NCBI GenBank assembly: GCA_024704765.1 | Contig: JAKMXF010000144.1 | Location: forward strand, 558,001-622,000 | Direction of reading: 5' to 3' | Length of the DNA stretch: 64,000 nt | Source of the DNA: Oopsacas minuta | Taxonomy: Eukaryota; Animalia; Porifera | Part shown: positions 12,319-63,635 of the stretch, piece after piece | Position numbering within the stretch: position 1 is the stretch's first letter | Layout: every line of letters begins with the position of its first letter | Position numbers and translations under genes: made by a program | The notes under the pieces: model-generated | Seen by the model: the letters and a program-made list of their open reading frames with translations, nothing else | Databases searched by the model: none | Told to the model about the DNA's origin: nothing

Positions 12319-15300
12319 ATGAACAGAGAGCAGTCAAAGAGTTATTTTGAGAATAAGATCACAGCTCAACCATTTGAACAGGCAAATACTCAGCCTACTG
12401 TTACAGTACCAGACATAACACAGCCTTCTTCTGCTACTGCAGATCTTACTATCTATCAAACTAATGAAAGGCCATTTGTAAGAATATTTGTGTTTATTCC
12501 TTGCCTGATATTGATAATATTTCTAATTGTTTATTTTATAGAAAATATTCGCTGGTATAACAACTATCCCTCTTATCGTCATATTTCTGGTAAGTTATAA
12601 TAACAAAATATTGGGAGCTGTTTCATTATTATTACTATTATTATTATTATTATTATTCAGTATATCTAATTATAGGCATCTTTTGCAATCGTTATCTATA
12701 AAGGAATAGAAACGCCAACTTATCTACCTCTGCTCATCAACCTAATCCGTAAGTTATAGTATATACTGTACCAGGTTATACCCTCTATAATTGTCCCATA
12801 CCTAACCTTCGTTACCCCCTCTCTTCGTGAGAGAGGTACTACTACTATTACTTGGCCAGTATTTGTTAATGTCTCATCAAAACACACTTAAGCCTATAGT
12901 AATTAACTCAAATTATAGTAGTAGTCACAACAGAGTTCAATCAAGCAAGTACATACTAATCCATAGTCTATAATTGTTGTTGTGGGAGATTGTATCCCTG
13001 TGGAGCAGCTGGTAGAACATAGGGCTGTCCTGGGTATACCATAGGGGTTCCCTGTGGGAGGACCGTGGGGTACGTACCTGGCACAACTTGGAAAGGAAGG
13101 GGTTGCTCAGGGACAGTAGGGGGAGGTGGGTAAGCTGCTTGCAGGCTCTGGGGTGCTGGAGGGTAGGTAGGGTAGTTGAAATCAGGTATGAGAGAGGGAG
13201 GTTGTTGTTCCTGTGTACCAGGGGGAGGATATTGAGGGGGGTACTGCGAGGGTTGTTGGTACACAGGGAGAGCTTGCTCTTGTACTATTACCTGTGTGTG
13301 TCTGTACGCATCACTTGATTCTTTGAGTAGTTTCTGGTAGAAAGCCATAGCCTCTCTAAACTGTACATTTAAATCCATTAATCTATCATATTTGGATTGA
13401 TAATGCTGTATTTTCTGGTTAATTAATGGACGCATTAATTCACAGTGTTGCTCTAGTTCCTTCAATGTTTTATCTTCTACAGAGGCTTCTGAATGTGCAT
13501 CAGCTTTCTTCAACATTTCTAGAGTTAAATCTAGTTTCTCTTCGTTTATATCTATTTTCTTTCCGCGATCTTCTTTTTCTTTTCTCTCCTTAGCGCGCTC
13601 TTTCTTAGCTTGAGACTGTCCGGCTACATGTTTAGACACGAAATTCTTGGGAAATAGGCCTACCTTGCCTCTCAGCTGACCTTTCCACCAGTTTTCGTCA
13701 CTGTTGTCCAAAATCTCAATAACCTAACAATAGCAATAATATTACATACCCAAGGGACCGCGATAATTACTTCTATATAAGCGGGTATTCCGGCATAATG
13801 GGAGTTGAGTGTAGTATACAACAATAAATAAATTAAAGTAATTCCATCTAGACTATTTATACTTACATCCCCTGATTTGAAATTGAGCTCGTTTTCCTCT
13901 CCAGCATCGAAATCGTACAAAGCTTCATACCTATCTACATTTCCTTTCTTCTGCACACTCCCTCCTGTACCAATACCTCCTCCTCCTCCTCCTCCTAAGG
14001 ATAATCCCTCCATTGCTGGGTACATACTACTAACACCAGCTGTAGCTCCCAGTCTCTGTTCCTCTTTGAGAGAAGCTGCTATAGCTTTCTTCATATCCTC
14101 ATCTTCCTTCTTCTTCGCTACCTCATCAGTAGTCTTTGGAGGTTTATTTTCACCCCCTGCTTCCTCTGCATCTGGGAATTTTATTCCATCCCTCTTCAGC
14201 ATGTGATAAGCTACACATAATAAGTTCATGTCAGGATCGTGTTCATTCTCAGTCGCCCAATTATGTAAAAGCCCTCTCAATCTATCTCTGACTCTGTCAT
14301 GTAGCTGACTCACTTGTCCTAGGAGACGACGTAGCTCATCAGTGAACTCCCTCTTAGCCAAGAGGATCTGGAACTTCTTCCCACAATTACTGTAGCAAGC
14401 ATCTAGCAGTGTAATCGCCTTCATTGCTACATTGGGATTAGGGTTCCTCAGACGTTTCATAATAACGTTGAGGTAATTCTGTGGTGTGTTACCATGCGAA
14501 GCAGTAATCTGGTGACATATAACTATTATAGCTGTCCAATCCTCTTCCTGAGTTTTGTCACTGGTTACTTTTGTCACTTCATCTTCTATTGACGGCATTC
14601 TAGAATATTCTAAAGCTTAGACAATGGTATTATAATTATTGTAATATAATGTAAGGCATTATATTCTTATTACTTATGTATGTAACTATGGATTCATTGA
14701 CGATACAAACATTGTGCAATAATTATGATTTCACCCTTTCTGTATACAAATCTACACTGATGATGATGGGCAGATATTATAATTTTTGCCTTTTATAGTG
14801 ATAATCCTGGTCACTGGACTTGTTGTAAGTATTCTTTTTATTCTCTAACGATCTCATGTTGTACCTTAAAGTCAATATTATCCCCAATATTTGTATTTAC
14901 ATATGATATTATATATGTATATTATTTAGTACTTTTGGTATTTCAGAGGCACAATGGTAAGTTATAATTATGCATAAATACAAATATTCATAGACATACT
15001 TGCCAACCTGAGTGGAGGAAAACGTGGGACGTAAGGTACTACTTTAGCGGAACGTGGCATATTTGTATTAGACTGGACTACAAAAATGTGGGACAATTAA
15101 GGTCTTTGGCAAGTTTTGGCGGGACATTATCCTCAACACATGTCCGAAAAAACGGGACAGTTGGCAAGTATGTATATAATTTGTATCCATAAACTTTATG
15201 ATATACACATTATCCTAGTCCTACACCATGATCTGGTATATCGTAATCTACGCTATACTAACAGTATCGCAGTGTATTTTCATTGACATATTTGCTCTCG

Positions 15301-15437
15301 TGACGATATCACCTAGCTCTAGTGGACCCGCTACCCCCCATACTATTCCTGCTATCCCTATTAATACATCCAATACTACAAAGCATTTACTCTTTACTAA
15401 TCCAACTACTACTATATCACAATTGGATCTGTCATAG
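12319..15437 (+). CDS. Orphan small multi-pass membrane protein (183 aa, ~3 TM helices), 6 exons; hosts STAM in intron 3
   Basis: Exons 12319-12477, 12542-12589, 12676-12748, 14799-14824, 14930-14956, 15219-15437; all GT-AG (donors gtaaga/gtaagt), phases 0,0,1,0,0 join into one 552-nt frame: ...TNERPF|KIFAGITTIPLIVIFL|ASFAIVIYKGIETPTYLPLLINLIL|IILVTGLV|YFWYFRGTM|SYTMIWYIVIYAILTVSQCIFIDIFALVTI... No homolog recognised. Confidence 0.7.
12625..12657. repeat. (ATT)n microsatellite in intron 2 of the orphan TM gene
   Basis: About 11 ATT units with one ACT interruption. Confidence 0.9.
12968..14598 (-). CDS. STAM: Signal-transducing adaptor molecule (ESCRT-0; VHS-UIM-SH3-GAT), 2 exons, 495 aa
   Basis: Exons 14598-13867 and 13723-12968 (phase 0, gtaagt...ttag). 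VHS (EEDWTAIIVIC...NPNVAMKAITLLDAC), UIM (KEDEDMKKAIAASLKE), SH3 split by the intron (ALYDFDAGEENELNFKSGD|VIEILDNSDENWWKG...GLFPKNFV), GAT region, P/Q/Y tail. Confidence 0.95.
13749..13813. mobile_element. MITE remnant in the STAM intron (same family as 57123 and 58300)
   Basis: Shares caagggac-gcgataattacttctatataa with the copies at 57123-57264 and 58300-58479; ends ggagttgagtg, a degenerate TIR. Confidence 0.6.
14995..15172. mobile_element. MITE with 13-bp perfect TIRs, 178 bp, in intron 5 of the orphan TM gene
   Basis: CATACTTGCCAAC ... GTTGGCAAGTATG; internal repeated gggac motifs; no clear TSD, superfamily not assigned. Confidence 0.7.
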
Positions 15438-16033
15438 CTAGTTAGTTTGGTGTTTGTATGTTTATATTATTGGTTATCTTTGCTACCTCTACTTGCTTGT
15501 TTTGGTTCATATTTTGAGGCTTATAATTATTATTGATTGAATTTTTGCATTATTGTACGATTAGAGTTATTAATTTTTTCGAAATTAAGTGTATTATTAT
15601 ATAATTGTTACTCATTTAAATTCTCTTTTTGACATATCTATAACTTTCTGATGTCTCTTGAGTCATTTTAACGTCTCTCGGCGCTGGCGCTAATTGCTTA
15701 TTCTATCAAGGACAGCAAATTACTTATTGCACTTAATCATTCTCTACTCGATGTATTCAGGGTTGTTTCCATGGTTGAACTGTTCTTCGTTTGAATATAC
15801 TTGTGTGATTACAAACTAGCTCAGAAATTAATAAAATTACTTATTTTGAAACAATTACACAAATTATTGCAAGAGTTGGACATTTTGGAACATCAAAAAT
15901 CTAAATTACATTTAACTATGATTTCTTCACAAACACGTATAATAATTGTCCTTTTCTTTTCCATATTAGTAGCTTTATAAAAGAAATAAGAGAATTCAGT
16001 TTAGTTGGGAATTGCATACACTCGTGTTAGGAA

Positions 16034-16261
16034 ATGTTAAATTCAGAAGTTGATAAGGGAATGAGAGACTCCTTACAAATATGGAGACAAAAATTATCTG
16101 AAATATATGAAGATAGACTTAGTTCACTTGAAAAAAGAATTATTGAAGACAGGAAACGTATTTCAGAATTAGAACAAGAAGTTCAATTGATTTATCTTAA
16201 AGTTATACTTCTTGTACAAATGTTAAGAGATATCGATACGACGAATACTATCCAAGGATAA
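16034..16261 (+). CDS. Possible short coiled-coil ORF or exon
   Basis: 75-aa ATG ORF with heptad character (IYEDRLSSLEKRIIEDRKRISELEQEVQ); no family recognised. Confidence 0.35.
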   Translation: MLNSEVDKGMRDSLQIWRQKLSEIYEDRLSSLEKRIIEDRKRISELEQEVQLIYLKVILLVQMLRDIDTTNTIQG

Positions 16262-16626
16262 TAGCTACATATAGTACGAATCTTAAGGCAAATCAAAGTT
16301 AATTCAGCTCCTTAATATCAAGCTCAAGATTGTATTTATTCATATTCATGCTTTGTTCATGGTTTTGGTGATTGTTGTTATTATTCGATTCACTTATCGG
16401 TTAGATGATTATTTCCATATTCGTGTTTGAAGTATTGTAACTCATTATTTAATAAAATGGTTTAGATCGATATTTAAGTAAGTAAACACAGACGAAATTG
16501 AGAATTCGCGAATTAAGATTTGGACTAGTCTAGTTCTCAAATCCGCGGATTCTCTATTCAATAGCAACATATGCTATTATAATTTTCCATTTGGAAATTA
16601 TACTATTTGATAGTTTGCAGTTAGGT

Positions 16627-18126
16627 ATGCACCAACCTACCAGTTCCCATGCTCCACATCTTAATCACAGATCGCCAGAGGGTATATTACTCGGCTCCCA
16701 AATAGCAGTAGAATCAATTCGTATTATGGGGGAGTCTATGATAATAAACAATCTCCCTGAAGATGCTGCTAGCTATCTCGCGGATGATATAACCTTTCGA
16801 TTGAAAGATATTATAAGACTTTCTCAGAAATTCATGCATCACTCCATTAGGAACAGGCTCACAACATCTGATATTGATTCTGCCATGAGAGCACGTAACA
16901 TAGAACCTGTGTATGGATTTAATTCAGATGACGTCATACCCTTACGTATGACCTCAGGAGTAGGACGGGAAGTTTTCTACAAGGAAGAACCAGAAATTGA
17001 TATTGGCAAGATATTAAACTCTACACTGCCAAAGGCTCCACATGAAATATCCCTGAGAGCTCATTGGCTAGCCATAGAGGGAGTTCAGCCTAGAATCCCA
17101 GAAAATCCAGTTTCTCATTGCAAAGAAGAGAAAGAAGTGAGTGAAGAATCTCCTAGTAGTAGATCACCTCGTGTAGAAAGTTCTTATGAGATTATTGAGT
17201 CTCCTGCTCTTATAGACTTACCAGCAGAACTACAGTTATATTACAAAGAAATTTCAGAGGCTTGTGTGGGTATAAATCGTGTTAGACGAGAGGAAGCACT
17301 CAACAGTCTCAGTAGTGATCCGGGGCTACTCCCACTTATGCCACGATTTTCTGTGTTCATAAATGAAGGTGTGAAATTAAAATTGAGTGAGAACAAAGTA
17401 CCAACACTCCTGTCACTTGCAAAAATGCTAAGAGCCCTGCTAGATAATCCAACCTTATCACTGGATAAATATTTACATGAGTTGCTACCGTCTGCATGTT
17501 CTTGTGCTCTGTTTAACTACCAGGCTACACATGACTCACCAGAGATATGGAATCTAAGAACAGAATCAGCTGTAATTGTAGGTCGTATGTGTAAGAAATA
17601 TAATGACTCTGTTAACAGTATACAGTCACGTCTCACACGTCTATTATTCCAGATTCTGTCAGATGAGGCTACGAGTCTTGGGAGTAGATTTGGAGCTGTT
17701 AATATTATATCAGAGTTAGGTCCTGAAGCTGTTAAGATATTATTGTTACCACATTTACAAATTGGAGGTGAGATAGTTAAGAAAGCATTAGATAGTGAAG
17801 ATACTGCTGCACTTATAGCAGCTAATAGATTACAGTCCCTGATTGTTAAAACATGTGCTCCTGTGCTGGTGAAGAGCCGTGAACCTCCTGATGTAGTGGA
17901 GAAGTTTGAGTTAGAATTTGGATATCTGGGAAAGCAGGTTTGGACAGAAGTACGAGGGCTACGTCCTCACTTACATGCTGTGAATGACGTAAATGTTATT
18001 GTAGCTGATTCACCAGTTAATAATGAGGAAGTAGTAGGGGAAGATGTATTATCTGATTACACAGGGTTTACTGATGAGATGGGGTACTCGTCTCTCAATC
18101 AGACTGTTAACAGCATGGACACGTAA
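16627..18126 (+). CDS. TAF6: TFIID subunit 6, intronless CDS
   Basis: Histone fold (ESIRIMGESM...LADDITFRLKDII...KFMHHSIRNRLTTSDID...NIEPVYGF), LRAHWLAIEGVQPRIPENP, HEAT-like C-terminal domain. First ATG 16627. Confidence 0.93.
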   Translation: MHQPTSSHAPHLNHRSPEGILLGSQIAVESIRIMGESMIINNLPEDAASYLADDITFRLKDIIRLSQKFMHHSIRNRLTTSDIDSAMRARNIEPVYGFNSDDVIPLRMTSGVGREVFYKEEPEIDIGKILNSTLPKAPHEISLRAHWLAIEGVQPRIPENPVSHCKEEKEVSEESPSSRSPRVESSYEIIESPALIDLPAELQLYYKEISEACVGINRVRREEALNSLSSDPGLLPLMPRFSVFINEGVKLKLSENKVPTLLSLAKMLRALLDNPTLSLDKYLHELLPSACSCALFNYQATHDSPEIWNLRTESAVIVGRMCKKYNDSVNSIQSRLTRLLFQILSDEATSLGSRFGAVNIISELGPEAVKILLLPHLQIGGEIVKKALDSEDTAALIAANRLQSLIVKTCAPVLVKSREPPDVVEKFELEFGYLGKQVWTEVRGLRPHLHAVNDVNVIVADSPVNNEEVVGEDVLSDYTGFTDEMGYSSLNQTVNSMDT

Positions 18127-18674
18127 TATAGATATTAATTACACAATAACATTCACGTGTTGTTGATTTTGTTAGTGATAAATTGGTTCTGGCAAAATTT
18201 GAGTTCGTTTATTTCAACAAGGGTTGTTTTCTAAGTTTTAAGGAGTTCACGTTCGTTTATTAGCAAGTCGTATTTTGCACGAATTTTCCTTGCTAATACG
18301 CGAATTTGCTATTAGAGGAATTATTTAAATACGAAATGGACTCTAAGTCCGCGATAACTTGTTAGAATATTGCTAATAGACGAACAACTGACGTCTAATT
18401 TGATACATTTCAATGGATATAATATCAATGGCTTTAGTATGTTTTATTTCTTCAAGAATTCAGCCGTTTTCATAGCTCCCCTTAGTATCTGTCCTCAGTA
18501 TTTCCGCATATACTCATTTCGTACACGGTTCTGCTCTCATCACTACGTATGCATGTACTATCTTGATCCTACTGATATTAGGCATAGCATCTTAGAAGCC
18601 GAGTGAGTATTTTTACTTGATATTGCATTATGAAACAGTATTATACTATTTCAACTTGTCTGTTGTCATATTGA

Positions 18675-21017
18675 ATGTCTCGAAATCAAAAGCAAAAGCT
18701 CGCGAATTTGAAAGCAACAAACGCTCGTAGACATCTGCGGAATTTGGAAATAGAAGCATATGCATCTGCAGTGAATGTATTTCGTGCACAAGGAGTGCTG
18801 ACAAAGGACAAATTAGATGTTTTAGATAATTTAGGTAAGCATCTTGATATTCCTATAGAAAGACATTATGCTGAATTGAGACGTGCTCTCAGTGACTACG
18901 AACTGAACAAAACAGCTGAAACTTTGACAGGTTTCGATCCTTCGTCCAGCTGGTACGAAGAAGCGCAAAAATTCGCAGACAATTATCAGCCGTTCATCCC
19001 AAAAGCCCGCTTCACAACCAATGCATTTCGTGCTATCAGCAACTACTGTACTAACCAGATGCTACGTGACTTACTGCCTTGCGAGGAGAATGGAAAGAAT
19101 ATAACTGAGCTGAATGCAGGAGATACGAATGAGAAATCAGATCATTGTTATCATAACAGAATACACCCTCTAGCTGCTAAGATATTAGCAGAATGGGGAG
19201 CAGATTTGGAGGAACCTGGTGCCCTCTCTCGTTCCTACCTTACCCCTGTTGGGCTAGAAGAACTAACAGAGGTGTTCCCAGATCAAAGCGAAATTGAAGA
19301 CTTGGAGAATCCACCTCTATCTCCATCAGAAGACGTTACTATAGAAAACTACATGCTTACTAGCGGTATGAGAAGAGGAACTGAACCGAAGAGCCTCTCA
19401 ACCAAACGGAGACGCTGTACCTCAGAACACAAATCTCAAACAGATGATACTCCCAGCTATGAACCTAGACGTAGTAGTGATAAGAACACTCCCACTAACC
19501 TGAGCAAGATTATGCAAGATTATCAATTGATAATGAGTCTAACTAAGAAGAAGAAAGTAGACCAGCCTGAAGCTTCTACTGACAGGAGACGTAAGGGAAA
19601 GAAGGCAGAGTCTGTAACACAGGAATCTCCCATACAGGTTACTGAAACCAAGAATAGAAGTGGACTTATAGTACCATGTATTTCTATTGAGAGAATGCCT
19701 CTATCTCAGCCTAAGACTCGTACTCCATCACCTGGAAAGAAAATTTCAACAAGCACCATACCAGCTGTAATAGCAAGTCCTAAGAAACCAAATATTAAAC
19801 GTATGAAGAAGAAACAACTCTCACAAACTACATGTGTACCTATACCCACAGAATCTAAATCTCCTTTGAAACGTAGAAGAGTTAGACTGAAGAGAATTTC
19901 TGTTGTTGTTTCACCAAATAAAGTTATTGACTCTCAAAAGGAGACGTTAGGAAACTCCCAAACTTCCTCACTAAATCCAACAATACAAACTCAATCAGTA
20001 ACAGAGTCTACCCAAGACATTATTGAACATACTAGCCATAGTCCTGAACCAATGGAAGAGGTAACTGAACTTCTAACTACAGACACTAAGGATATTGATA
20101 ATACTCAGGAACATGAAAGTGAACCTCCACAGACTGATCGCGATAATTTCGAGTCTTTTGTATCTGACATGCCAATCACGTCATACGGTAACAATGAAGA
20201 AGACAAATCAGCTAGTACACAGGAAGTTGTTTTAGAGGCGACAGCACGTAGTCCTGAATATATGCAAACACCTGAACAAACGGATACAACACTCATAACA
20301 GAGCAGATAGTATCAGAGCAAGTACTAGTTAGACGTAAGAAAGATAGTAATACTTCTCTAGATATTCCATCTCCTGACAAGATACGTAACGAGATGCAGA
20401 GCTTATACTCTCCTATTTCAAGTCTAGACACTCCTCCAGACCTAGAGAGAGCTGGTCACTTTGAGCTGGTACCAGAGACTGCCCCTTCTATCCACCCTAA
20501 TTTCTCTCCCATAACTTCCCCCGAGGAGTCTCAGTCTCCAGACAAACAGCTCCATTCGTTAGTTATACAACCAGCTGAGCGGTTATCCCTAGTCCTCCAG
20601 GACCCCTCAATAGATGTACTCCCTCATAAATGCTCTCTAGCACTCAGTGATATCGTAGAGGAGGTGTGTGACTCCATTTCTGACCCTCTCTCTCCCTCCC
20701 TCACATATACACGTGACGAATCGAAACCCTATACTTCACCAGACTCTGTATTCACAGATTCTTCTCTAATGTTATCAAAAGCTCTCAATTCCTTCATGAT
20801 GAGTCAAGGTATATCAGAAGATAATATAGAACATAGACCTGCTGCACAAGAACATATCTCTGATACAACTACAGAGTTATCTGATCTCATAAGTACACAG
20901 GTGCTACCAGCTGTTGAGGATCTAGACTTTGCTCAGATATCAGCTTCATTGCTTAGCATAGATCAGCTGACTACAGAGCCCACACATCAGCCTCCATCTG
21001 ACTCAACAAACAGCTGA
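18675..21017 (+). CDS. EMSY: EMSY-like ENT-domain protein, 780 aa, intronless
   Basis: N-terminal ENT domain (LRNLEIEAYASAVNVFRAQGVLTKDKLDVL...IPIERHYAELRRA); remainder is S/T/P/K-rich and disordered. Confidence 0.8.
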   Translation: MSRNQKQKLANLKATNARRHLRNLEIEAYASAVNVFRAQGVLTKDKLDVLDNLGKHLDIPIERHYAELRRALSDYELNKTAETLTGFDPSSSWYEEAQKFADNYQPFIPKARFTTNAFRAISNYCTNQMLRDLLPCEENGKNITELNAGDTNEKSDHCYHNRIHPLAAKILAEWGADLEEPGALSRSYLTPVGLEELTEVFPDQSEIEDLENPPLSPSEDVTIENYMLTSGMRRGTEPKSLSTKRRRCTSEHKSQTDDTPSYEPRRSSDKNTPTNLSKIMQDYQLIMSLTKKKKVDQPEASTDRRRKGKKAESVTQESPIQVTETKNRSGLIVPCISIERMPLSQPKTRTPSPGKKISTSTIPAVIASPKKPNIKRMKKKQLSQTTCVPIPTESKSPLKRRRVRLKRISVVVSPNKVIDSQKETLGNSQTSSLNPTIQTQSVTESTQDIIEHTSHSPEPMEEVTELLTTDTKDIDNTQEHESEPPQTDRDNFESFVSDMPITSYGNNEEDKSASTQEVVLEATARSPEYMQTPEQTDTTLITEQIVSEQVLVRRKKDSNTSLDIPSPDKIRNEMQSLYSPISSLDTPPDLERAGHFELVPETAPSIHPNFSPITSPEESQSPDKQLHSLVIQPAERLSLVLQDPSIDVLPHKCSLALSDIVEEVCDSISDPLSPSLTYTRDESKPYTSPDSVFTDSSLMLSKALNSFMMSQGISEDNIEHRPAAQEHISDTTTELSDLISTQVLPAVEDLDFAQISASLLSIDQLTTEPTHQPPSDSTNS

Positions 21018-50200: not shown

Positions 50201-53200
50201 TCAGGTCTATCTCAATTCTCAGATATACCTCTAGACACAGAGATAGGTAGAAGCGAGCTGGATAGAGTAATAGATGAGAAGAATCAGCTTATGGATTCAC
50301 ACAAATATTTACAGGATAATTACGATGAGTTACAAGCTGAGAACCAGAAAATACAGCAACAACTACGTACACTACAGATTAGATTCAAACATTCTGTTAA
50401 AGCACTAGCAGCTCGTCCTGTTACCGCACCTAAGATGCGTCCTCCTCTTCCCCGGAACAGACACAGTATGTCTCTCAACGAACCTCCTCAGTTGGATGGA
50501 GGAGCTAGTCCAGATCCAGGAAGGAGGGATAATCTGATGGTGGAGATGATAGATCATGATTTTCAGGTATAATATATGATAATGTCTTTTAAACGTATAT
50601 ACATATATAACTCGTTACATCTACAGTAAGTGGAAGCTGGCTGTAAGAACGCAGGATATAAGCCGCTTCGCTTGCTAACGATACATACATAACGCATATT
50701 TACGTAATACGAACCTTTGGCTCGTGGCTTTGCGATGAGCTCATCGATTGCGCCTCGAGGTATTCAACGGACAAGCAAACTGACAAAAACAATTGAGATT
50801 TAATAATATTGATGCTGTTTACAATATTCAGCCTCAGCATACTCGAGTATACCAGTATAGTCGTTGAAAGTATGATTCTACCCTCAATTTTGAAATTTGT
50901 TTACTTTATGTGCCTAAAAGTAAACAATAAATTTACATATGATTAATCCAAAAGTGTGAAAATCAGACATGGTAGAACACTGTAGAACACTGTAGACGTG
51001 ATGGAACACAGTGGAAGACGATGGAACATTGGAAATGGTTCTCACTTATTTGTGCATCTTTTTTACTGGCTATACGATCATATATTGCTACTCCCAAGAG
51101 GCTTCTTATCTCCGGGAACCACTGTATTGTCTTGTGTGTTTGATTGTTTATTATTTTTCTTTTCCTAGGCCCAGGAGAAACTACGTATGACTCATTTAGA
51201 GGAGCTGTGTACTGACCTAGAACTCCGATTAGAACAGCTGGATATAGAAAAGAAGGCTGCAGAAACTAAACTTTTTGAAACAGAACAAGACCGAGACCGA
51301 GTGAGACAAAAGAAGAAGAAAGATGATAAGATAACTAACTCTAGAATATCTGATCTAGAATCTGATAATATACAACTTAATGTACTCAAATCTGATGCAG
51401 AGGATAGACTTAACGATACACAATCTACTCTCAGTAAGAGAACTACAGAACTGAATGAGATACAAAAGGAGTTTGCTATTCTAACTCGTAAATTAGCCGA
51501 TTTTGAGCTACAATTCAAATCTTTATCTTCTCAAAATGCTGATCTTGAACAATCTGGTAAAGAGAACGAGCAAAGAGAGTCAAATTTGGTGAATGAGAGA
51601 ACTCAACTCAAGAAACAAGTACAATTACTGCAATCTGAGCTATCTACATGTAAATCTAAATATGACACACATTCCTTTGAGTTAGAACGGTTGCTAGCTG
51701 AATCAGAGCAACATGTCAGTAGACTTAAGTTAGAAAATGAGCATAATGTAAAGCGTATTCAACAGGATTTACAGGCATCACAACAGCTGATAACTGAGAT
51801 GAAAAAGGAAAATTCTCAATTGGTCAACAACCTGGAGAAGAGAATTGAAGAATTGGATAATTCTCTTTCGGAAGCTACTCAGAAACATAAACAGGAAGTT
51901 GAAATTATGTCAGATGAAATTCGTAAGGCTGTAGACAGAGAGAAATCTAATCGAGATGAGAAACACGCGATAGAACTTAAACTCGCGGAAGTTATCACCG
52001 ACCTAGGTGAGGTTACAAAGAGTAGAGATGCAGGAGATCGTGCTAGGGTGAATTTGAATGAGACTTTAGATCGTAACAAGTTAGAACGTGATCAGCTGGA
52101 CAAACAGCTGAAATCTGAGTTAGCAATACTACAGACAACACACGGTGAGGTTTGTATCAAGCTAGATCAAGCTGAAGCAAATCATAAACAGCTATTGAAT
52201 GAAGTACGTACTGAGTATGAGAATCAAATTACTAAGCTACATCAGGAGATAAGGGATCATATCCAATCAGCTGTTTCTACAGAATCTAAGTCAAAACTTG
52301 AGATTACAAGTCTAACAGCTGAGATAGAATCATATAAGAAAGAGTTGTGTAAGTTGGAAGCATTGCTTACTCGTGCTAAATTAGAATCATCAGCTACTGA
52401 GGACGAGAAGAGATTTGAGGTAGATAACATTCTCCAGGAGTTAGAGAGCTGTAGAGCAGAAATGGATCTCAATAGTGAGACGTATTTTGAGCGGGTTAAT
52501 CAACTCAAAGAGAAGTTGAGTTGTATGGAAGAGAAGCTTAATGACGTCACACTACATTCTGAATTAGAGAGAAACGATTTAGAAGAGAATATACAGAATT
52601 ACGAAGAGAGAGAAAAGTTATTAATTGAGGAATACGAAATGAGATTATTGGAGTTACAAACTAAATTTGATAATGAAATTACAGCCCGGTCACTTGAGGA
52701 AGAGAAAATAGCTGAAGAGATGGAACAACTGAGTCTTGAGTTGACTGAGAGTAGAAAAGAAATTAAAAGAATACAAGAAGGACACCTTGAAGAGATTCAG
52801 AAGTTCAAACAAGAAGAATTAGCTTCTCTTCAAAATCTCAATAATATTAAAAAATCTAAAGAAATTGAAATCACGAAACTACGTAACTCTCTCATAGACT
52901 GCGAATCTAAAATACGAGCATTTGAACAAGCAGACAGTGCTAGTTCAAATATATTGCTAAGGAAATCTCATGCATTAGATAGTGTTACAAACGAGCTAGA
53001 GTTCAGTCATAATGCTCGCAAACATTTGGAAAAGCAATTGGAAATATCTAAGAAAGAACTCCAAGTTGCTAAACAGGAAAACGTTGAATCGAAGAGAAAG
53101 TTTCAAGAGAGCCTAAGAGATGTTGAAGATGACAAGAGGCTAGCTGAACTTGAAAAACTAAAGTGTATATCTGAAATAGAATCAAAATACTCATTGATAA

Positions 53201-53514
53201 CTCAAGATTTGAAGAGAGGAATTGAGACTAGACAAACTGAGATTAATCTTCTGAAATTACGGCTGATAGAGGCCGATTCCATCCGAGCAGGAGATGATCT
53301 CAATGCACAATGGAAATCACATATTCAAGAACTGACATCACAGATCCGTGAGTTAGAACGTCAAGTTAAATCTAAAGAATCTATTATCGAACAGATACGG
53401 AAAGATACTAAAGAGTTCAATGAATTTAAACATCGCATGAACCATTTTAAGATGGAGAAAGAAGCTCTCATCTCTGTTATAGAAGAAATCTCTCATATAG
53501 AAGATTCTATTTGA
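47286..53514 (+). CDS. Ninein-like EF-hand + long coiled-coil protein, 6 exons, 1476 aa
   Basis: Exons 47286-47973, 48547-48746, 49243-49677, 49748-49984, 50042-50566, 51169-53514 (4431 nt, phase-consistent). EF-hands CFNRCDKDSDGFIDSKAL and LFKALDVNSLGKIAFKDF, a degenerate second EF pair in exon 3, then ~900 aa of heptads. Ninein/NINL assignment is by architecture only. Confidence 0.75.
48045..48377. mobile_element. pogo-like MITE, 333 bp, 23-bp perfect TIRs, TA TSD, in ninein-like intron 1
   Basis: TA|CCGTATTTATTCGAATAGTAGCC ... GGCTACTATTCGAATAAATACGG|TA; subterminal ggcgattatt x3; a second degenerate right TIR at ~48164-48186. Confidence 0.88.
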
Positions 53515-54080
53515 CTGGAATTTCCATAACTCATCTTCCCCAACTTAATTTCTAGAATTATTTTATTGTATACTTTTAACTTTGTTATAACTTTATAATA
53601 TTCAAAAATTAATTTACTTATTTTTTGTATTTCCTTTTTGAATTATGTTTTCGATTCCTTACTAATAATGCTGTTTCTAGAATTACCAATATATTTGTTA
53701 GTTCGTTGATTGTTCATTTATCAAGCCGCTTCTCTTGCTCGCCTGCGCGGCTTGTGGACACTATGTTCACATGCAACTCGGCACTTACCTTTTTCATGAG
53801 TATACCTTGAAAGTGGGAAATTCGTATTCATGGTAATCGATTAACACTGTAAGGCAGTTCAAGCCAAATTTCTGGAACTTAGGATAGGCTTTACTTAACA
53901 TTATGATACCCCTGATATTGATTGTATTGTAATGTGATCTGTAGAGCATTTATTTATTAGGCATGTTAGATTTCTGCAATTCGGTATAAATTAATAATTA
54001 CCCACAATATTATATAAATTCTTTTGTGTAGATACTCTCTCTCTCTAGCGTTTTCTAACTTTTACTTCAATCAGAATAAA

Positions 54081-54410
54081 ATGGCAAGTGCAGGTGATTT
54101 GGAAACAAAGTTCAAGAAGGCAGCTGATTTTTTTAAGGCATACCCCAAAGGAGGTAAAATACAGCTCTCGAATGATCAGCAGTTAAAGTTCTATTCCCTC
54201 TTCAAGATAGCAACAGTTGGCAAGTGTAATATCGCTGCTCCTGGTGTAACTGATTTAGTAGGAAAAGCTAAATATGACGCTTGGAATGGGCTAGGTGATA
54301 AATCTAAGAACGATGCAATGACCGAGTACATACAGGCATTGATGGTTGTGCTCAATGAGCATGACAAGACTCCAGCTGAGGAAACCCTCCTCAAGGAAAT
54401 AGCCGTCTAG
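54081..54410 (+). CDS. ACBP: Acyl-CoA-binding protein
   Basis: FKKAADFF...SNDQQLKFYSLFKIATVGKCN...GKAKYDAWNGL...DAMTEYI; ATG 54081. Confidence 0.92.
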   Translation: MASAGDLETKFKKAADFFKAYPKGGKIQLSNDQQLKFYSLFKIATVGKCNIAAPGVTDLVGKAKYDAWNGLGDKSKNDAMTEYIQALMVVLNEHDKTPAEETLLKEIAV

Positions 54411-54643
54411 TTATTTTCTTTTCTCGATAGAATCTAGTTTTCATCCGTAAATTGTTTTCCTGTATAATCTATGTATCTAATGTTTGATCCGTATCTTTCT
54501 AGTGATATTCACCATGAATAGATTTATATTTGTACATTTTATTTGTGCAATTAAATCATGTAACTTAGTTCTATGTAATTTGTACTGCGAAACGTTCATC
54601 ATACAACGAAAATTATTTACAAATTTTGCTAAGATTTTCTGTA

Positions 54644-55375
54644 ATGTCAAATAGCAATTACGACTTCTTTGACTCGAAGGATTCTGCTAACTATCAATTC
54701 CATGTTCCTCTGAGAGAACTCAATCCGTACATAACATGTAGTCTTTGTGCTGGTTATCTTATCGACGCTACTACCATCATGGAATGTCACCATAGATTCT
54801 GTAAATCCTGTATAGTCCGTCATCTCCAGGCTAGCTCATCTTGTCCAGAATGTAATGCATTACTTAATGATTCTGATCCATTGTCCTGTCTTGCTTTTGA
54901 TAGAGACATACAGGATCTCGTGTATAAGCTAGTACCTGGTCTACAAGAGAGTGAAAAGAAAATGCGTACAGATTTCTATATTTCTAGGAGCTTAGAGATT
55001 CCTAACTTTAATATTTGGGAGAAAAACCCTTCAACATTCACTGACCCATCAGAAGTACATTTCCACAGTCGTGACGAAAAGATATCTCTTGAGATACTCC
55101 CTCACCACACACTCTCAAATTATAGAGAAGCTAATTTACAAACTTTATCAGATAAGTATACACGCTGCTCAATGCGTACTCTAGTCTATCATTTGAAAAG
55201 GTTTATTCACTGTAGGATTAAGGTCCCACACGCTTATGAATTAGAGTTACTGTGTAAGGATAACATTCTAAGGAAAGATACCAGTCTTAAAGAAGTGTAT
55301 TTACAATATTGGGCGACTACGGAGAAGTTATTTCCTGTTATAGTACACTACACTCTCAAAACTAGATTGTCTTAA
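54644..55375 (+). CDS. PCGF1: Polycomb group RING finger protein (PCGF1-like; RING + RAWUL)
   Basis: LNPYITCSLCAGYLIDATTIMECHHRFCKSCIV...CPEC, DRDIQDLVYKLVPGLQESE, C-terminal RAWUL-like region. Paralog identity uncertain. Confidence 0.85.
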   Translation: MSNSNYDFFDSKDSANYQFHVPLRELNPYITCSLCAGYLIDATTIMECHHRFCKSCIVRHLQASSSCPECNALLNDSDPLSCLAFDRDIQDLVYKLVPGLQESEKKMRTDFYISRSLEIPNFNIWEKNPSTFTDPSEVHFHSRDEKISLEILPHHTLSNYREANLQTLSDKYTRCSMRTLVYHLKRFIHCRIKVPHAYELELLCKDNILRKDTSLKEVYLQYWATTEKLFPVIVHYTLKTRLS

Positions 55376-55656
55376 ATTCGTATTTTATACTCATACGATT
55401 TCAATTCTTAGAGTGTTATTAATCGAAGAGTTTTGGCAATTCATAATTAGTTAACTTGCCAAAATTAAGGCCCCAGTATAGTGTATTAATGTTAGGTCGA
55501 ATTGTCCTGAGACATAATTTTTCTGAAAGACGGCACTCTGACCTACATTTTTGCAATTTTATGCATATAAAACTGACTCATAATTTTCGAGATATTATAG
55601 CCATGCTAAGTGTTTACAATTAATTATTTACTATGCACATGTTAGCCCACTTGTAT

Positions 55657-58600
55657 ATGTCACAACCTGATTCACCGGTATCACCGGACAAGGAGTCCCC
55701 TCCTCGCCTCTTTATAACACACATTGAAGCAGAGAATTTCAAATCTTACGCAGGCAAGAAGACAATTGGTCCATTTATACAGAAGTTTACCTGTATTATA
55801 GGACCTAATGGTAGTGGGAAATCTAACGTAATTGATGCTGTACTGTTTGTATTCGGATATAGAGCTAGGAAGATACGCTCTAAGAAGTTATCTGTGTTGA
55901 TTCACAAGTCAGCTGAGTTCCCTAATTTTCGTAGTTGTAAAGTTACTGTGTACTTCCAGCAGATTAGAGATATTGCTGATGACCAATACGAGGTGGATAT
56001 ACGTACAAATTATCTCAATAAAATATTGACTTATTTCTTGTATAGGTAATACCAGGTAGTGATTTTCAGGTATCACGAATTGCTCATCACGACAACACTT
56101 CTGAATACTTTCTAAGCGGAACTAAAGCTACTTACAGAGAAGTTACAGATCTGCTTAGAAACTACGGGATTGATTTAGATCACAATAGGTTTCTTATCCT
56201 ACAAGGAGAAGTATGTAGTTTTTAGAATATCAATCAAGTTAATTATTCATTTGATATGTAGGTAGAATCTGTTGCTCTTATGAAACCAAAGGGGCAACAC
56301 GAACATGACGAAGGAATGTTAGAATATCTAGAAGATATAATTGGTACAGCAGATTATAAAGATACTATTGAGGAATTATTTAAGGAATATGAAGAATTGC
56401 TTAATGCGAGAGGCGAAAAAGTTCATCGGTAAATGAAGATGACTAGCATAAATTAGATTTGTATTATTTGTATTATTTTAGATTAAAATTTGTTGAGAAG
56501 GAATTGAGTCAGTTAGAATCAGCAAAAGAAGAAGCAGAACAATTCTTGAAGCAGAGAGATAGAGTTGCTCTATCTAAGTATAAATTATTTCACAAAAACT
56601 TATTTGAATTGAAAACAGGTAGAGGAGGAGTTGATGAGAATTTAGAGGCATTGATAGTGGCGATTACTAAGATAGAAGATCAATCAGAAGAGGTAAATAT
56701 GATACTACGTACGTATTAATGTATTCATAACTATTTAGTATAATCTCTCTACACTATATCATATGAAGTGAGACGTGTACTGTATGCTTGTTTCTAGCAA
56801 TCAAATCTAGTCAAAGCAAAGCAGCATGATTTGAAGAAGAAAGGTAAGGTACTCGATAAGATGAAGGAAGCAGAGGAGAGTAAGACTGCTGCGCTGACTG
56901 AGTGTGAAAGAAGAGATGTAAAAGCTAGAGAAGATCAGAAAACAGTTAAATCTAATTTAAAATCATTCAACAAGACTCTTGAAAAAGAAAGACAGAAATT
57001 TGAGGACTTACAAACAGCTCCAGAGAGACTAACTAAACAGATTGAAGAAGGAGAGAAAACTAAAGTAATTATTGAAAAATCTCTCTATATAGAGGATCAG
57101 AAGTAAATATTGTAGGGATATGTAGTCAACTCCAGTTAAATCGAAGCTCAAGGGACCGGAGTAATTACTTATGGAATACGTGTTACTTTTATATTTTACA
57201 ATTTAAGAATTGGATACAAGCGGATATTCGATATATCCGTGTTCTATATAACAGGAGTTGATTGTAGTTTGTATAGAATGCAATAAATATAATTACGTAT
57301 GTATATAGATTGGAGCAGATAATGTCAGGGCTTAGAGAAGCTACGAGAGACTTACAGCAAGAAAAGGAGCAGAAAGTTAGTGTGCTATTACAAGCTAAAG
57401 TTAAAGTTAATGATGCTAAATCAGAGCAAGACATGGCTAGTACTGAGTATGACTTATACATGAGACAGGTCAGAGATCATGAAAGTCAAACAAAAGACAA
57501 ACAATTTAATCTGGAAGATTCTCAGAAGAAACTACAAGGTATGCTCCAAACATATTTCAGTGTTATTGTCATTTTAATAATTTTATTTTGACAATATAAC
57601 TATAAGGTAAATACCCGTTATAAGAATAACACGAGATATATCTTAATTTATTATGTGCTAATTGGTTGTAGTAATTACTTTACTCTTCTTGGGTAGTTCT
57701 TGACTGGATGTGGTTCCTTTCCTCTTACGGGTTGTTGGGGTAGAGCTACGACTTGATGTCTGCTTTGGAAATGATCCACTACCCTCTCCCTCATCCATGG
57801 AATATTCTAGAAAGTTCTCAACATCTGTCATACTACCAGACTCAGGTAGAGTCTCGTATTTATGTTTAATAGCTCCCCATTCAAATTCGGCAGATAGCAA
57901 TGCAGATTTCAGCTCCAATAGTAATAATACATTATTTCTGAGCACGTTAAATTGTGTAGTAACATTCTCTGTAGCAATTGGCTTAGTTCCTATACCCAAT
58001 TCATCTAGTAATTGCTCCATTGCTTTAGCTCGTTTGTTAGTCATTGTATTAGGAACTTTAAGTCTGTAACTACGGAGATATGGACCTGCACCTCTCTCCT
58101 CGATTATCTTATTCAGATGTTTTGTGATGTTCCCGCTTCTGTCTCTGTCTCTATCTCTATCCTTCTTACTCTTTTCCTTCTTCTTGCTGGTGCTACTACG
58201 TTTGTTCTTATCAGAACACCTATCGTCACTAATTTCTACTTGCTCTATTAATTTCTGTGCTGTTTGAGCTATTCTCTCTCTTTCCTATATACACATGTAC
58301 AGTTAACACCCGCTATATCGAAGCCAAGGGACAGCGATAATTACTTCTATATAATATATGCTGAATTGTTATAATCGATTAACTGTATGTTACTTTGAGG
58401 GTTTGGGACTATATTTGCACAATTTCAGACTTCCATATAAGCGAGTATTTCTATATATCCGTGTTCGTTGAGTTTACTGTATTTCAGTCTGAACTTACCT
58501 TCCTTCTATATTCCACCTTCTTCACTTCCTCCACTAGATAATCATGCTCTTCAATTTGTTTCTGAGTTCTACCAAATAGAAGTTCTAATTGCTCCTTCCT

Positions 58601-61600
58601 CAGCTTTTCATGTTCTACATCATATGCTACTAGTGACTCAGAGAGGTCTTCTCCTGGTATAGCCCTTAACTTGACTATACAGTTACATACTGTATAATAG
58701 CGATCCTTCAGCTCTTCAACTGATCTAGGGGGAAATCTGGCTATATCATACCTATCCTAAAAGAGAATCATTAATCACATTCCAAATACCTATATATCTA
58801 ACCAAGCTACCTTAATAATAATGAATCTCAGATCAAATCTATCACATAGCTCCAATAAATGCTTAGTCTCTTCCATGCTCCACTCAGAGTCCTCTAAATA
58901 TATTTTATATTCCTCTTCCGTATATTCAGGTATTCCTACTCTATCATTGTGTCTAGCGAATTGATATTTCTTGTTCTCCTCCCCAGCTCGTACCCAATGA
59001 TAGAGAATAGCATTGTCTGTACGAGCCTGGTTAATAAACGGTGTCCATTTCCAAGATCTAACTTTTTGAATACCTAATTTAGCTTTGACGTGTTTATACC
59101 CTAGACTGGTGTCTATTTCTATATCTGGGAGGAGTTTCTGTACTCCCTCTCCTTCTCTGAGAGCTTTTACTTCTCTGCTAGTACCGTCAGGTAGTAATGC
59201 AGCCCCAGTAGTTCTCTTCTTAACTCTCTTACTATGACCATGTGAGAGAGCTTGCTCTTTCAGACTTGTATTAGTTATTTCGCGGTTTTCTTCACCTTTT
59301 CTTCCGGCTAATATATCTTGAGCATCTTTTGCACTAGTCATTGTGTTATGTACTGGGATAGATACAATCAATATTTGTGAATATTTTAAGGGAAAAATAC
59401 AAAATTCTTAAATTTAACTACGTTTAATGAAATTTATATTTGTTTGCAGCAAACAGATCGCTTTGTGAAGAATTGAAACAAAAAGTTCCTAGACAGAGGA
59501 AGGAGATAGATAACTTTGAGATAGAGATTGATCAGTACACACAAATAGAGACTACATTAGCTCCTAAATTAGAGGCTACACAGCGTCAATTGGTGGAAGG
59601 GAGATCTTCTCTCTCAGCTCACAAAACTAGAGGTTATTGCAACTTATTTCATTAGATATTTATATATAGAGTGCATAAAGAACTGGGTTCATTTTATCTC
59701 ATAAGAAGGTTCAGTTACCTGAAGTAACATCTCTATGATTAAGATCCATAACCTTTGAATTGTAATCATTCAGGTGTACATATTTACTTTACCATTCTGT
59801 TGTTAGGGAAGTTGTTAGAGGGTTTAATGATGGCAAAGGAGGCTGGTCACATAAAAGGGATTATTGGCAGACTTGGAGATCTTGGTAAGTAGAACATAGT
59901 GTAACTAATGTTATCTATTTAATATACACCCTCATTCTACAACAGAAAATCAGTTAGAAAGTTTCTGTTAGAAACTATTGTACTTGAATTATAAATGTTT
60001 ATTCAATTTTGCTAAAGAAATCTTTTAATTCTAAAATGGCTACGAAAACTGTAATAAATGAGCCTCCTCGTGACATAATCACACCCCAGGTACAAGCGTC
60101 CCCAGATACTTCATCAGGTCCCAACAAGACCCTCTCCCCTACCCCCTGCATCCTAGTGGTCGGCATGGCGGGAGCTGGTAAGACTACTTTTGTACAGCGA
60201 TTAACTGCACATCTTCATTCTAAAGCCGCACCTCCTTACGTCATAAACCTAGACCCAGCAGTTCTTAAACTCCCCTACCCAGTCAATATAGATATCCGTG
60301 ATACAGTAAACTATAAGGAAGTAATGAAGCAGTATGGATTAGGTCCAAACGGGGGTATAATGACTGCATTGAACTTATTCTCCACTCAATTCGATCAAGT
60401 TCTACAATACATAGAGAAGAGAGCTAACGAACACAGTTTGGTTATATTCGATACTCCAGGACAACTTGAGGTATTCACATGGTCAGCCTCCGGTACTATA
60501 ATAACAGACACACTAGGTCTGACACTCCCTACCATCGTGGTGTATGTATTGGACACATCTCGTAGTGTAAATCCTACTACATTTATGTCAAATATGCTGA
60601 ATGCCTGTTCTATCCTATACAAAACTACTTTACCATTCATTCTGGTAATGAATAAGTGTGATATTATTGATAACGGATTTGCTGTGGAATGGATGAAAGA
60701 CTTTACTGTGTTCCGGCAGGCGTTATCCCAGGAGACCAGCTTTATGTCTAATCTTGTACAATCCATGAGTCTAGCACTAGAAGAGTTCTACTCTAATATT
60801 TCTAGCGTGGGAGTATCCTCACTGACTGGTGCTGGTATAAATGAATTCTTAGCTGCTGTAGATAAGGGAAGAGTTGAGTACTGGGATTATTTAGCCAGGA
60901 GGAAGAAGATTAGTGAGCAAAGAGAAAGGGAAATGAAGGAAAAGACGATTGACAAACTTACTGAACTCAAGAAACAAAGTGGAAAGGGCACCAAGCTTAA
61001 ATTAGGACTAGACCTCGCCGTACAGCCTGAATATGAATATGAAATAGAGGATGATATCTATGGTGTAGGGGGAGAGAGTCCTGATGAAGGGGACCTGGTA
61101 CATGATGAGGATTTGGATTTAGATGAATCTTGAATTTTACGGAATTTTGGAATTAATTATTAGCCCATCTGGATATTACAAATTTACAAAATATTTTATG
61201 ATAGCAGCTGAATGTATATGCCCAACTAGCAACTGATACACAGTAGAAACTCTATAAGCGGGGAGTGGGGCATAATTTAGAAAAAAATATGCCTCACGCC
61301 ATTGAAATTTTCCTCTCTAGGTGGGGAATTCAACGATAAATTTTCTTGAATAATCATTTTTGTGCTATATTTCCGTATTTATCGCTATGATGGAATGAAA
61401 TTTTTGGGTTTCTCAGGAGAAATTTATTTAACAAACAACTTTTGGGCATATTCTTATAATCAAATATCATTGAAAAACAGTCATTGGAGGAAGTGACATA
61501 TTGACTCGAAAATCTCAGCTTAAGACATTTACCTTCCACTTTTTCAAATATTGTACTACTTGTAATTATTGTATCCTGTTTCTCTAGCTTCCATAGACCA

Positions 61601-63635
61601 GAAGTATGACGTAGCCATCAGCACTGCATGTCCTTCTTTAGAGAATATCTTACTAGACACAGGTGATACCAGTGTACAATGTATCAACTTCCTGAAGGAG
61701 CATGATCTGGGTAGAGCTACTTTCTCAGTCTTAGAACGGATGGAAAGGAATAGAGCCCAGGCAATGAAACCATTTCACGGACCTGAGAACGTTCCCAGGT
61801 TATTTGATCTTCTTCATGTGAGTTGTATTTATCAATAACGTATTTGTGGTAACTTAGATTGTCCATTCTAAACTCTACTCCTTTTCAGATACAAAATGAT
61901 GCATATATACCTGCGTTATATTTCGTAACACAAGACACACTAGTTGCTAACAACCTAGAAGAAGCTACACGTATCGGTAAGCTAAACAACAACAATTTAT
62001 TCTAGTTAGTTGTATATTTATTGGTGTATCTATCTTGTCAAGGTATGGGGATAGGCACTGAAGGGAAGAGATATAGAGTTGTGACACTGAGTGGAGATGT
62101 GGTGGATAAGAGTGGTACTATGTCAGGGGGAGGGAAACAGGTTTCTAGAGGAAGAATGTCAGCTAACATTCAACAAGAATTCAGCCCTGTGCAGGTTCTT
62201 ATCTTTTTCATTGTTCTTTCCTTCCTAATTACTTTCAAGACGAAGAATTGCTACTAATACGCATAGGCGCCGAAAGTGGGAGGGTCAGAGAGGATAGGTA
62301 CCCCTACGCCCTAGTATTGAGGGAGCGTATACCTAAACTAGTAGTCAATGAGGTACATCCCCTGAGCTTAGGGAGGCTTCGCAGTCATGCTAGTAAGTAA
62401 GAATTGAGTATGACGTCATAATTTTATGAAACTAATCAAAAAGGCAAGGTTCGTCTGGGTCTCGAACCCAGGACCTTCTGCGTGTAAAGCAGACGTGATA
62501 ACCACTACACTAACGAACCAAGATTCTTATTAATTCTTACTGTTATGACTTTTGTAAAAACATCTTAAGAAAGTTGCTACAAAATAATTGAATGTTTTTG
62601 TTTTAGAAATACACAAATTTGCTAGTATTATTCTATAGAGAGATAAGACTGACGTTGCGAATGTGTATGTGTATAGTAGCAGTTTTGAAAACACTGACTT
62701 ATCATTGTATTTATGTCCCTATTTATGTCCAATCTGTATATAATATGCATTATCATAAGTTCTGGCACAATCTATTGTTAATATTTGCAAACATAATCTC
62801 TGCCAGAGAAACTTGTGTTGATAATATGTAATTCCTAAACTGATTAGCTTACCGGCCTTTCGGATACGCGTATTAGCCAAGTAAAGGAAATGTCAATCCA
62901 AATAGGATACAAGATTAGTGTTGCACGTAATCGCATTTATAACTGCCCTTATTAAATGTGTTACTTGTTTTATCTATTCCTCGTTACGCTACGTGTATAG
63001 AATTGCCCTGTGATGAGCTGTATTACAGCATATTGCTCCTACTGAGTGTGTACTTGATGAGGTGTTATACTGAGGGCTTATGATGCAAATTCGTTTGCAA
63101 AATATATCTAATTAATGGTGGAAAAATATAATTTTTGTTGTGGTTTGTGTTTACTTAACCCATTATTTGGAATTTATTTTCCACTCATTTTCAGATTGAA
63201 AGTCTTGAGAAAGATACAGCTAAGCTAAAGCATGAACTGGAAGAGTATCAGAAACGCAAGCGAGTAGCTGAAAGCAAGTTATCTCTCCTACAAACTGAAG
63301 TACAGGAGAATGAGAGTAGATTACAGAAAGCTAGCCTGGATATTGACTTCTGTTCTGCACAATGTGAAGTTTACAAAACCCAGCTGAATGAGCTCATGAG
63401 TAACAGAGTTACTGTGGATCCTAAGGAAGTAGAGAGGCTAGAGAAAAGATACAAGGAATGTCAGGACGTGTATAATCAAATACATACCAAGTTCTCTAAG
63501 TCTGAAGCTGAAGTAGAGAAGTTAGATGAACGGATTAATGCAGTAGGAGCTGATAAGGTTCAAGCACAGCAGAAAAAAATTAATTCTGTCAAGAAAGAAT
63601 TGGATGATCTGAAAAGTAATATCTCTAAAGCAAAT
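55657..63635 (+). CDS. SMC4: Condensin subunit SMC4, at least 12 exons, 3' part beyond the window; hosts DMAP1, GPN1 and tRNA-Val
   Basis: Exons 55657-55992, 56046-56210, 56262-56428, 56482-56692, 56798-57102, 57309-57538, 59450-59632, 59807-59884, 61588-61817, 61889-61976, 62043-62194, 63195-63635; phases all compatible. ENFKSY, Walker [37 protein letters not shown]|VE, hinge GIIGRLGDL|[29 protein letters not shown]...SGTMSGGG. Confidence 0.95.
57123..57264. mobile_element. MITE in SMC4 intron 5, 142 bp
   Basis: tagtcaactccagttaaat ... atataacaggagttgattg|ta; internal sequence shared with 58300 and 13749. Confidence 0.7.
57658..59341 (-). CDS. DMAP1: DNA methyltransferase 1-associated protein 1 (SWC4/EAF2), 3 exons, 471 aa, nested in SMC4 intron 6
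   Basis: Exons 59341-58811, 58756-58499, 58284-57658 (phase 0, GT-AG, 1416 nt). [17 protein letters not shown]...LYHW, SANT domain [24 protein letters not shown]|DRY...[40 protein letters not shown]-like [10 protein letters not shown]. Confidence 0.93.
58300..58479. mobile_element. TA-flanked MITE, 180 bp, filling most of DMAP1 intron 2
   Basis: TA|CAGTTAACACCCGCTATATCGAA ... GAGTTTACTG|TA; family sequence shared with 57123 and 13749. Confidence 0.72.
60036..61133 (+). CDS. GPN1: GPN-loop GTPase 1 (XAB1), intronless, nested on the SAME strand in SMC4 intron 8
   Basis: [83 protein letters not shown]; acidic tail. First ATG 60036. Confidence 0.96.
62438..62442 (-). terminator. RNA polymerase III T-run terminator
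   Basis: TTTTT on the minus strand, 5 nt downstream of the tRNA acceptor stem. Confidence 0.65.
62447..62519 (-). tRNA. tRNA-Val (UAC), in SMC4 intron 11
   Basis: GGTTCGTTAGTGTAGTGGTTATCACGTCTGCTTTACACGCAGAAGGTCCTGGGTTCGAGACCCAGACGAACC(T): perfect 7-bp acceptor stem, anticodon arm TCTGC-TTTACAC-GCAGA, T arm CTGGG-TTCGAGA-CCCAG, intact A and B boxes. Confidence 0.95.

Follow-up and report, generated by a model that had tools for sequence, protein, structure and literature searches.

DMAP1 and GPN1 are nested head-to-head in consecutive introns of SMC4 in the glass sponge Oopsacas minuta, and the pair of SMC4 exons that separates them shows no sign of constraint beyond that on the protein

The window (the whole 64,000-nucleotide stretch of O. 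minuta DNA that was analysed) contains a plus-strand SMC gene with two further protein-coding genes inside it. By sequence similarity the host gene is SMC4, and other SMC proteins are ruled out: the top five solved-structure matches of its first exon were all SMC4 (best 1.6e-40), against 1e-17 for SMC1A. Within the window the host encodes the SMC_N domain, a coiled coil and the SMC hinge (Pfam values below), and the coding sequence for its C-terminal head is located past the end of the window. Each exon was searched separately, rather than as part of a spliced joint model of SMC4 or DMAP1. The genes, exons and introns of the locus were as follows:

55633 to 57538, plus strand: SMC4 upstream coding exons, six blocks, with Pfam SMC_N (3.2e-29) on the first exon; all blocks kept in five other assemblies
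57539 to 59449, plus strand: SMC4 intron with the whole of DMAP1 inside it on the opposite strand; splice sites read, phase 1+2 across 57538/59450
57658 to 59341, minus strand: DMAP1 coding sequence in three exons (59341-58811, 58756-58499 and 58284-57658, stop included); 471 aa
59450 to 59632, plus strand: SMC4 coding exon a; 2 nt, 60 codons and 1 nt, with AG at 59448-49 and GT at 59633-34
59633 to 59806, plus strand: SMC4 intron between exons a and b, 174 bp; alignable across species at its splice sites only
59807 to 59884, plus strand: SMC4 coding exon b; 2 nt, 25 codons and 1 nt, with AG at 59805-06 and GT at 59885-86 (GTAAGT at 59885)
59885 to 61587, plus strand: SMC4 intron with the whole of GPN1 inside it on the same strand; donor GTAAGT at 59885, acceptor AG at 61586-87, phase 1+2 across 59884/61588
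60036 to 61133, plus strand: GPN1 (GPN-loop GTPase 1) coding sequence, 365 aa and intronless; Pfam ATP_bind_1 4.9e-80
61588 to 61823 (3' boundary approximate), plus strand: SMC4 exon with the body of the hinge; Pfam SMC_hinge 1e-13; kept in five assemblies

The six upstream SMC4 blocks lie at approximately 55633-56000, 56046-56222, 56262-56432, 56477-56704, 56798-57103 and 57301-57538. Among their donors, the final one alone was resolved at single-base level, with its GT at 57539-40. Splice phases agreed at 57538/59450, 59632/59807 and 59884/61588, each junction being 1+2. The flanking SMC4 exons form one frame and one gene: the phases fit at these three junctions and the hinge motif spans 59884/61588. 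Exon a encodes part of the coiled-coil arm ahead of the hinge. Exon b ends in ...GRLGDL and the Pfam SMC_hinge match on the following exon begins at profile position 10; exon b therefore encodes the start of the hinge, as had been claimed from the sequence at the outset. The placement of exons a and b in the interval between the two guest genes, also part of that original prediction, was borne out by their AG/GT borders, their phases and their conservation. The sequence is 31-40% G+C, and its introns are short and of the GT-AG type.

Both guests were identified from their domains or closest matches. DMAP1 has GT/AG splice sites and all of its exons are in phase 0; its first exon matched Pfam SANT_DAMP1_like (PF16282, 8.8e-18) and its last exon matched DMAP1 (PF05499, 8e-18). 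The gene is single copy in the genome, and its N-terminus and all three exons were kept in the five other assemblies. For GPN1, all named best matches were GPN-loop GTPase 1, at 58-67% identity. It is the sole copy in the genome, where its two paralogues are 32-34% identical. DMAP1 lies wholly within the SMC4 intron at 57539-59449 and GPN1 wholly within the one at 59885-61587. Their start codons, at 59341 on the minus strand and 60036 on the plus strand, stand head-to-head 695 bp apart, with 694 bp between them, and the coordinates first given for this pair hold to the base. Because the guests point apart, the two short SMC4 exons fall between their start codons. Since both guests sit inside SMC4, host transcription must cross both of them; on this point, too, the two nested guests and the two coding exons between their ATGs agree with what was predicted.

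Relatives of the locus were collected by a word search with GPN1, which led to long contigs of ENA assemblies (L004, L005, L006/7, L008/9/13 and L010/11). Five other sponge-derived assemblies shared the layout, with both exons between the two ATGs, and their GPN1 sequences were 75-85% identical to that of O. minuta. Searches with O. minuta peptides (tblastn) placed exons a and b between the DMAP1 and GPN1 start codons in 5/5 assemblies. Gene order was also the same in 5/5 relatives: a RING/RAWUL gene, the SMC_N exon, further SMC4 exons, DMAP1 (opposite strand), GPN1 (same strand), and the SMC hinge. Across the five assemblies amino-acid identity was 68-80% for exon a and 84-95% for exon b, and the distance from ATG to ATG was 585-800 bp. 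In the sea anemone Nematostella, GPN1 spans 3.9 kb, has multiple exons and has unrelated neighbours, so the nest is not common to Nematostella. The double-nest layout is real and is conserved among the sponge-derived assemblies.

Coding exons that also carry regulatory sites, known as exonic enhancers or 'duons', predict extra synonymous constraint. A promoter shared by the two guests and running through exons a and b would amount to such a case, and the constraint that it predicts was not found in these exons. For the comparison of synonymous sites, O. minuta was aligned by codon with the five relatives one at a time, and residues that matched were scored for an identical codon. The codon was identical at 168/321 identical residues in exons a and b (0.523) and at 1529/2930 in ten other SMC4 exon blocks (0.522; odds ratio 1.006, p = 1.0), in a test that spans only 85 codons and whose comparisons share a tree. 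At residues conserved in all six species the corresponding counts were 8/48 and 70/438 (p = 0.84). Taken singly, exon a had a synonymous identity of 0.569, within the range of the other exons, and exon b had 0.417. The longest run of bases invariant in the six species was 8 in each of the two exons, compared with up to 11 elsewhere. The excess of synonymous constraint expected under the original prediction was thus absent from exons a and b relative to the ten other SMC4 exon blocks: the signal is flat. Apart from the constraint of coding itself, none was detected in exons a and b, which look like normal exons of the gene. A test of 85 codons could nevertheless miss an element that is short or lineage-specific, or a promoter role that is independent of sequence (e.g., nucleosome depletion).

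Conservation outside the exons was scanned in the six species across SMC4 exons 1 to 12, where conserved blocks delimit 14 non-coding intervals. The score was the number of columns with at least 5/6 species agreeing in the best interior 30-column window. Introns of the SMC4 locus were essentially unalignable, with best windows of at most 10/30 and three exceptions: a tRNA-Val gene (30/30), a window that overlaps exon b itself (14/30), and the stretch from exon b to the GPN1 ATG, which reached 21/30 at 59973-60003 and was the top non-coding stretch of the 14 intervals barring the tRNA. The last of these belongs to one further feature of the locus:

59917 to 60003 (approximate, ~85 bp), plus strand: conserved non-coding block, candidate GPN1 promoter; pure intron, with ACCCTCATTCTA at 59928-39, TAGAAAGTTTCT at 59955-66 and TATAAAT at 59990-96

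The TATAAAT lies 46 nt ahead of the GPN1 ATG in O. minuta and 36-71 nt ahead of it across the six species, and the spacing from TAGAAA to the TATA was 33-35 nt in 6/6 species. The three motifs of the block were not over-represented within the 64-kb window; they are specific to this locus and are not a general promoter grammar. A known small RNA was also considered as an identity for the block and was rejected, as it matched no Rfam family: an Rfam scan of 59200-60200 returned nothing credible, the sole match being a CRISPR repeat at E 0.94, which is a chance match. A promoter role of the block, the positions of the start sites and the separateness of the two promoters are inferred.

A transcript-like contig of GPN1 was found in the most distant relative. 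This Logan contig (L012, run SRR29297746) is 1139 bp long and consists of the GPN1 open reading frame, preceded by 41 nt and followed by 21 nt. Over its full length it is identical to and collinear with its genome, and it carries neither a leader nor any SMC4 exon. Its 5' end lies inside the intron, 41 nt ahead of the GPN1 ATG, and its 3' end lies within a short conserved motif downstream of the stop codon. Around both ends of the contig the two haplotigs of that genome do not differ, and the closest difference between them is 218 bp upstream; the ends are therefore not breaks in the assembly graph, and they look like transcript ends. Judged by the shape of the contig, the run behind it is probably RNA. 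L012 is thus consistent with transcription of GPN1 as its own unit with short genomic UTRs, as seen in a single contig from one relative and not from O. minuta itself. The 5' end is 17 nt past the T that opens the TATA box, and the usual distance from TATA to start is ~30 nt; a start so near the TATA is either an unusual start site or a sign that the contig includes some read-through. A second Logan source for GPN1 (P0132) was set aside as genomic and not a transcript.

The DMAP1 side of the interval was different in character. Between the DMAP1 start codon and exon a there is a single short gap:

59342 to 59449, strand not assigned: gap from the DMAP1 ATG to SMC4 exon a, 108 bp; 84-248 bp in the other assemblies, poorly conserved, best window 9/30

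This gap must accommodate the SMC4 branch point and acceptor and also some, if not all, of the DMAP1 core promoter and 5'UTR. The branch point and acceptor fill roughly its last 40 bp before exon a. No conserved promoter element was visible in it across the six species. The only recurring strings were the branch-point-like CTAAT/TTAAT and a weak ACTGTAT motif on the minus strand, found 27-40 nt ahead of the DMAP1 ATG in 4/6 species. TATA-like strings upstream of DMAP1 were discarded, being either not conserved or the complement of the SMC4 pyrimidine tract. A word search for DMAP1 transcripts with exon 1 returned only open reading frame calls from genomic assemblies and one stranger at 41% identity.

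The explanation favoured here, which we consider somewhat better than an even bet, is a conserved double nest in which each guest has its own very short intronic promoter and exons a and b are ordinary. SMC4 would be one long transcription unit, and two consecutive introns would each carry a complete and independently transcribed gene. Each guest would most likely be driven by a separate and very short promoter, placed in intron DNA beside its ATG. For GPN1 the promoter would be the ~85-bp conserved block ending in the TATA box, and the 5'UTR would not exceed a few tens of nucleotides. The DMAP1 promoter would be a poorly conserved, TATA-less stretch near the ATG that probably overlaps the SMC4 branch point and acceptor. 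A promoter belonging to GPN1 itself is reasonably supported, because the TATA block is intronic, L012 begins within the intron, and L008 has no acceptor between the TATA and the ATG; an intronic promoter belonging to DMAP1 is presumed. The original prediction was to fail if both core promoters proved to lie wholly within intronic sequence. For GPN1 this is what the candidate block at ~59917-60003 and the contig start in the intron indicate, while the DMAP1 half has no visible conserved promoter element to match.

The first alternative is the one originally put forward: the whole 695-bp interval would be one bidirectional promoter, and the SMC4 exon bases would bind transcription factors or belong to a nucleosome-free region common to both guests. 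In vertebrates, bidirectional promoters serve head-to-head pairs with start sites <1 kb apart, and the present locus resembles them in having divergent genes across a gap of <1 kb, here measured between ATGs (695 bp, and 585-800 bp in the relatives). The guests are head-to-head within this distance in 6/6 species, the arrangement has been retained over considerable divergence, and any DMAP1 elements more than ~100 bp upstream of the start site would fall in exon a or beyond. The gap nevertheless differs from that of a vertebrate pair in that a third gene contributes two coding exons and an intron to it, and in that its conserved element is one-sided and contains a TATA box. In place of constrained sequence shared by the two genes, the exons are flat at synonymous sites and have no unusually long invariant runs, the intron between them cannot be aligned, and the sole conserved non-coding block is intronic, lies at the GPN1 end and has its own TATA box. 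The claim that the exon bases do triple duty, as code, splice substrate and shared promoter, therefore finds no backing in these comparisons, and a single promoter across the interval is considered unlikely.

A narrower form of exon use concerns DMAP1. With no more than 84-248 bp between its ATG and exon a, its promoter may overlap to some extent with the SMC4 splice signals or exon a. In the tightest two species this distance is 84 and 93 bp, and a classical DMAP1 promoter could hardly fit there without touching the SMC4 splice signals or exon a. The promoter of DMAP1, perhaps together with a nucleosome-free region shared by both guests, might extend over SMC4 exon a and its acceptor, a triple use kept across glass sponges; we regard this as rather improbable. 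If it were true, a condensin subunit, a chromatin-complex subunit and an RNA polymerase II import factor would have their expression tied together mechanically.

According to another alternative, GPN1 would have no promoter of its own and would be cut from the SMC4 pre-mRNA by spliced-leader trans-splicing or by cis-splicing, the block being a splice signal, e.g., the acceptor TAG/AAA at 59955-57. GPN1 and its host are on the same strand, TAGAAA is invariant in 6/6 species, and a trans-spliced leader of ~37 nt has been reported in Aphrocallistes vastus (PMC10282587), although on only 4% of A. vastus long reads (PMC10282587). The contig L012, however, is collinear over its 41 nt, starts downstream of the TAG and has no AG just before its start. 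This one contig from one relative carries no leader, and no AG is conserved between the TATA and the GPN1 ATG. L008 lacks any AG between its TATA-like box and the ATG, the pyrimidine tract before the TAG is poor in several species, and a 5'UTR beginning at the TAG would include an upstream ATG (TAAATG) in three species. Excision of GPN1 from the host transcript is accordingly held to be very unlikely. Least probable of all is a role of the block for the host or for several genes, through SMC4 splicing over the 1.7-kb gene-bearing intron, suppression of the GPN1 poly(A) site or a distal enhancer: the block does lie 30-120 nt past the exon b donor, a frequent site of intronic splicing elements, and the host must read through a same-strand gene, but the conserved TATAAAT at the end of the block is as far from the GPN1 ATG as a promoter element would be, and the DMAP1-bearing SMC4 intron has no comparable block.

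The locus is a clear and conserved illustration of how tightly genes are packed in glass sponges: one host holds two guests, the first antisense with several exons and the second on the same strand, as well as a tRNA, and only tens to a couple of hundred bases remain for promoters and UTRs. It offers a place to measure the minimal length of an animal promoter, and to learn how the host polymerase gets past a poly(A) site on its own strand and a guest that meets it head-on. The dual-code reading, though more exciting, is unsupported.

Opposite-strand nested genes have been studied in C. elegans (PMC12274878), and interference by nested genes has also been treated (PMC3192792). These systems share with the present locus a guest in a host intron that the host polymerase must cross, with interference or coupling possible; they differ in being backed by expression data, whereas the SMC4 nest is known from its sequence.

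The closest parallels are in glass sponges themselves, in which very many genes are nested and many of the nests are conserved; in A. vastus there are 2432 nested genes, 12.4% of its genes (PMC10282587, Francis et al. 2023). As in those hexactinellid nests, complete genes lie in host introns, many guests there have a single exon, and nests and microsynteny are conserved among hexactinellids (PMC10282587). The present case differs from those nests in that two guests occupy consecutive introns and face apart across two host exons. Nested genes being already known in glass sponges, what is new here is a tidy double-guest example and not a new phenomenon. Francis et al. 2023 (PMC10282587) make no mention of this locus, of head-to-head or bidirectional pairs or of promoters, and nested genes, promoters and SMC are likewise absent from the genome paper on O. 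minuta. The public annotation of O. minuta includes only 83 nested genes, against the 2432 of A. vastus (PMC10282587), and low counts of nested genes in sequenced genomes were put down by the same authors to annotation settings (PMC10282587). The count of 83 is most likely due to how the annotation was made, and given these two counts the SMC4 locus is of use for annotation.

DMAP1, carried on the minus strand in one SMC4 intron, ends very close to the SMC4 exon that precedes it. Just 119 bp (window 57539-57657) separate the donor of that exon from the DMAP1 stop codon, and in the relative assembled as L005 the corresponding stop-to-donor gap was only ~29 bp (about 7810-7785). DMAP1 could avoid running antisense into an SMC4 coding exon only with an extremely short 3'UTR. 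The SMC4 donor at the DMAP1-side intron in L005 was GC rather than GT.

At the 3' end of GPN1, the guest in the next SMC4 intron, a conserved short motif (about TGAATTGAATTATTAG) was found 25-40 nt past the stop codon (window 61131-61175; 11077-11110 in L006, from the most distant relative). The end of L012, a transcript-like Logan contig from that same relative, fell within this motif, so GPN1 transcripts may be cleaved or polyadenylated here, inside the SMC4 intron.

Further SMC4 introns downstream contained additional guests, in the window or in some of the relatives:

62447-62519 (window), minus strand: tRNA-Val, anticodon TAC
14269-17607 (L004): LRR/EGF receptor-like genes
13106-18760 (L005): LRR/EGF receptor-like genes
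13237-15085 (L008): LRR/EGF receptor-like genes

Each of the five other assemblies had the tRNA-Val at this position, and the alignment was invariant in 30 of 30 columns. The downstream SMC4 intron of two other relatives (L006/L007 and L010/L011) was without LRR/EGF receptor-like genes; this guest set is therefore lineage-specific, in contrast to DMAP1, GPN1 and the tRNA.

Genes upstream of SMC4 were located within window positions 51187-55375, including a 775-aa coiled-coil ORF for which Pfam gave no match and two others:

54078-54410: ACBP gene
54626-55375: RING and RAWUL gene (PCGF-like)

The ACBP gene was not found among the genes called in the other assemblies; the order of the 775-aa ORF and the RING gene was preserved in every one of them. 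Within SMC4, the intron at 56696-56797 was ~100 bp long in the window, whereas in the most distant relative it spanned ~1.6 kb (L006, about 4752-6328).
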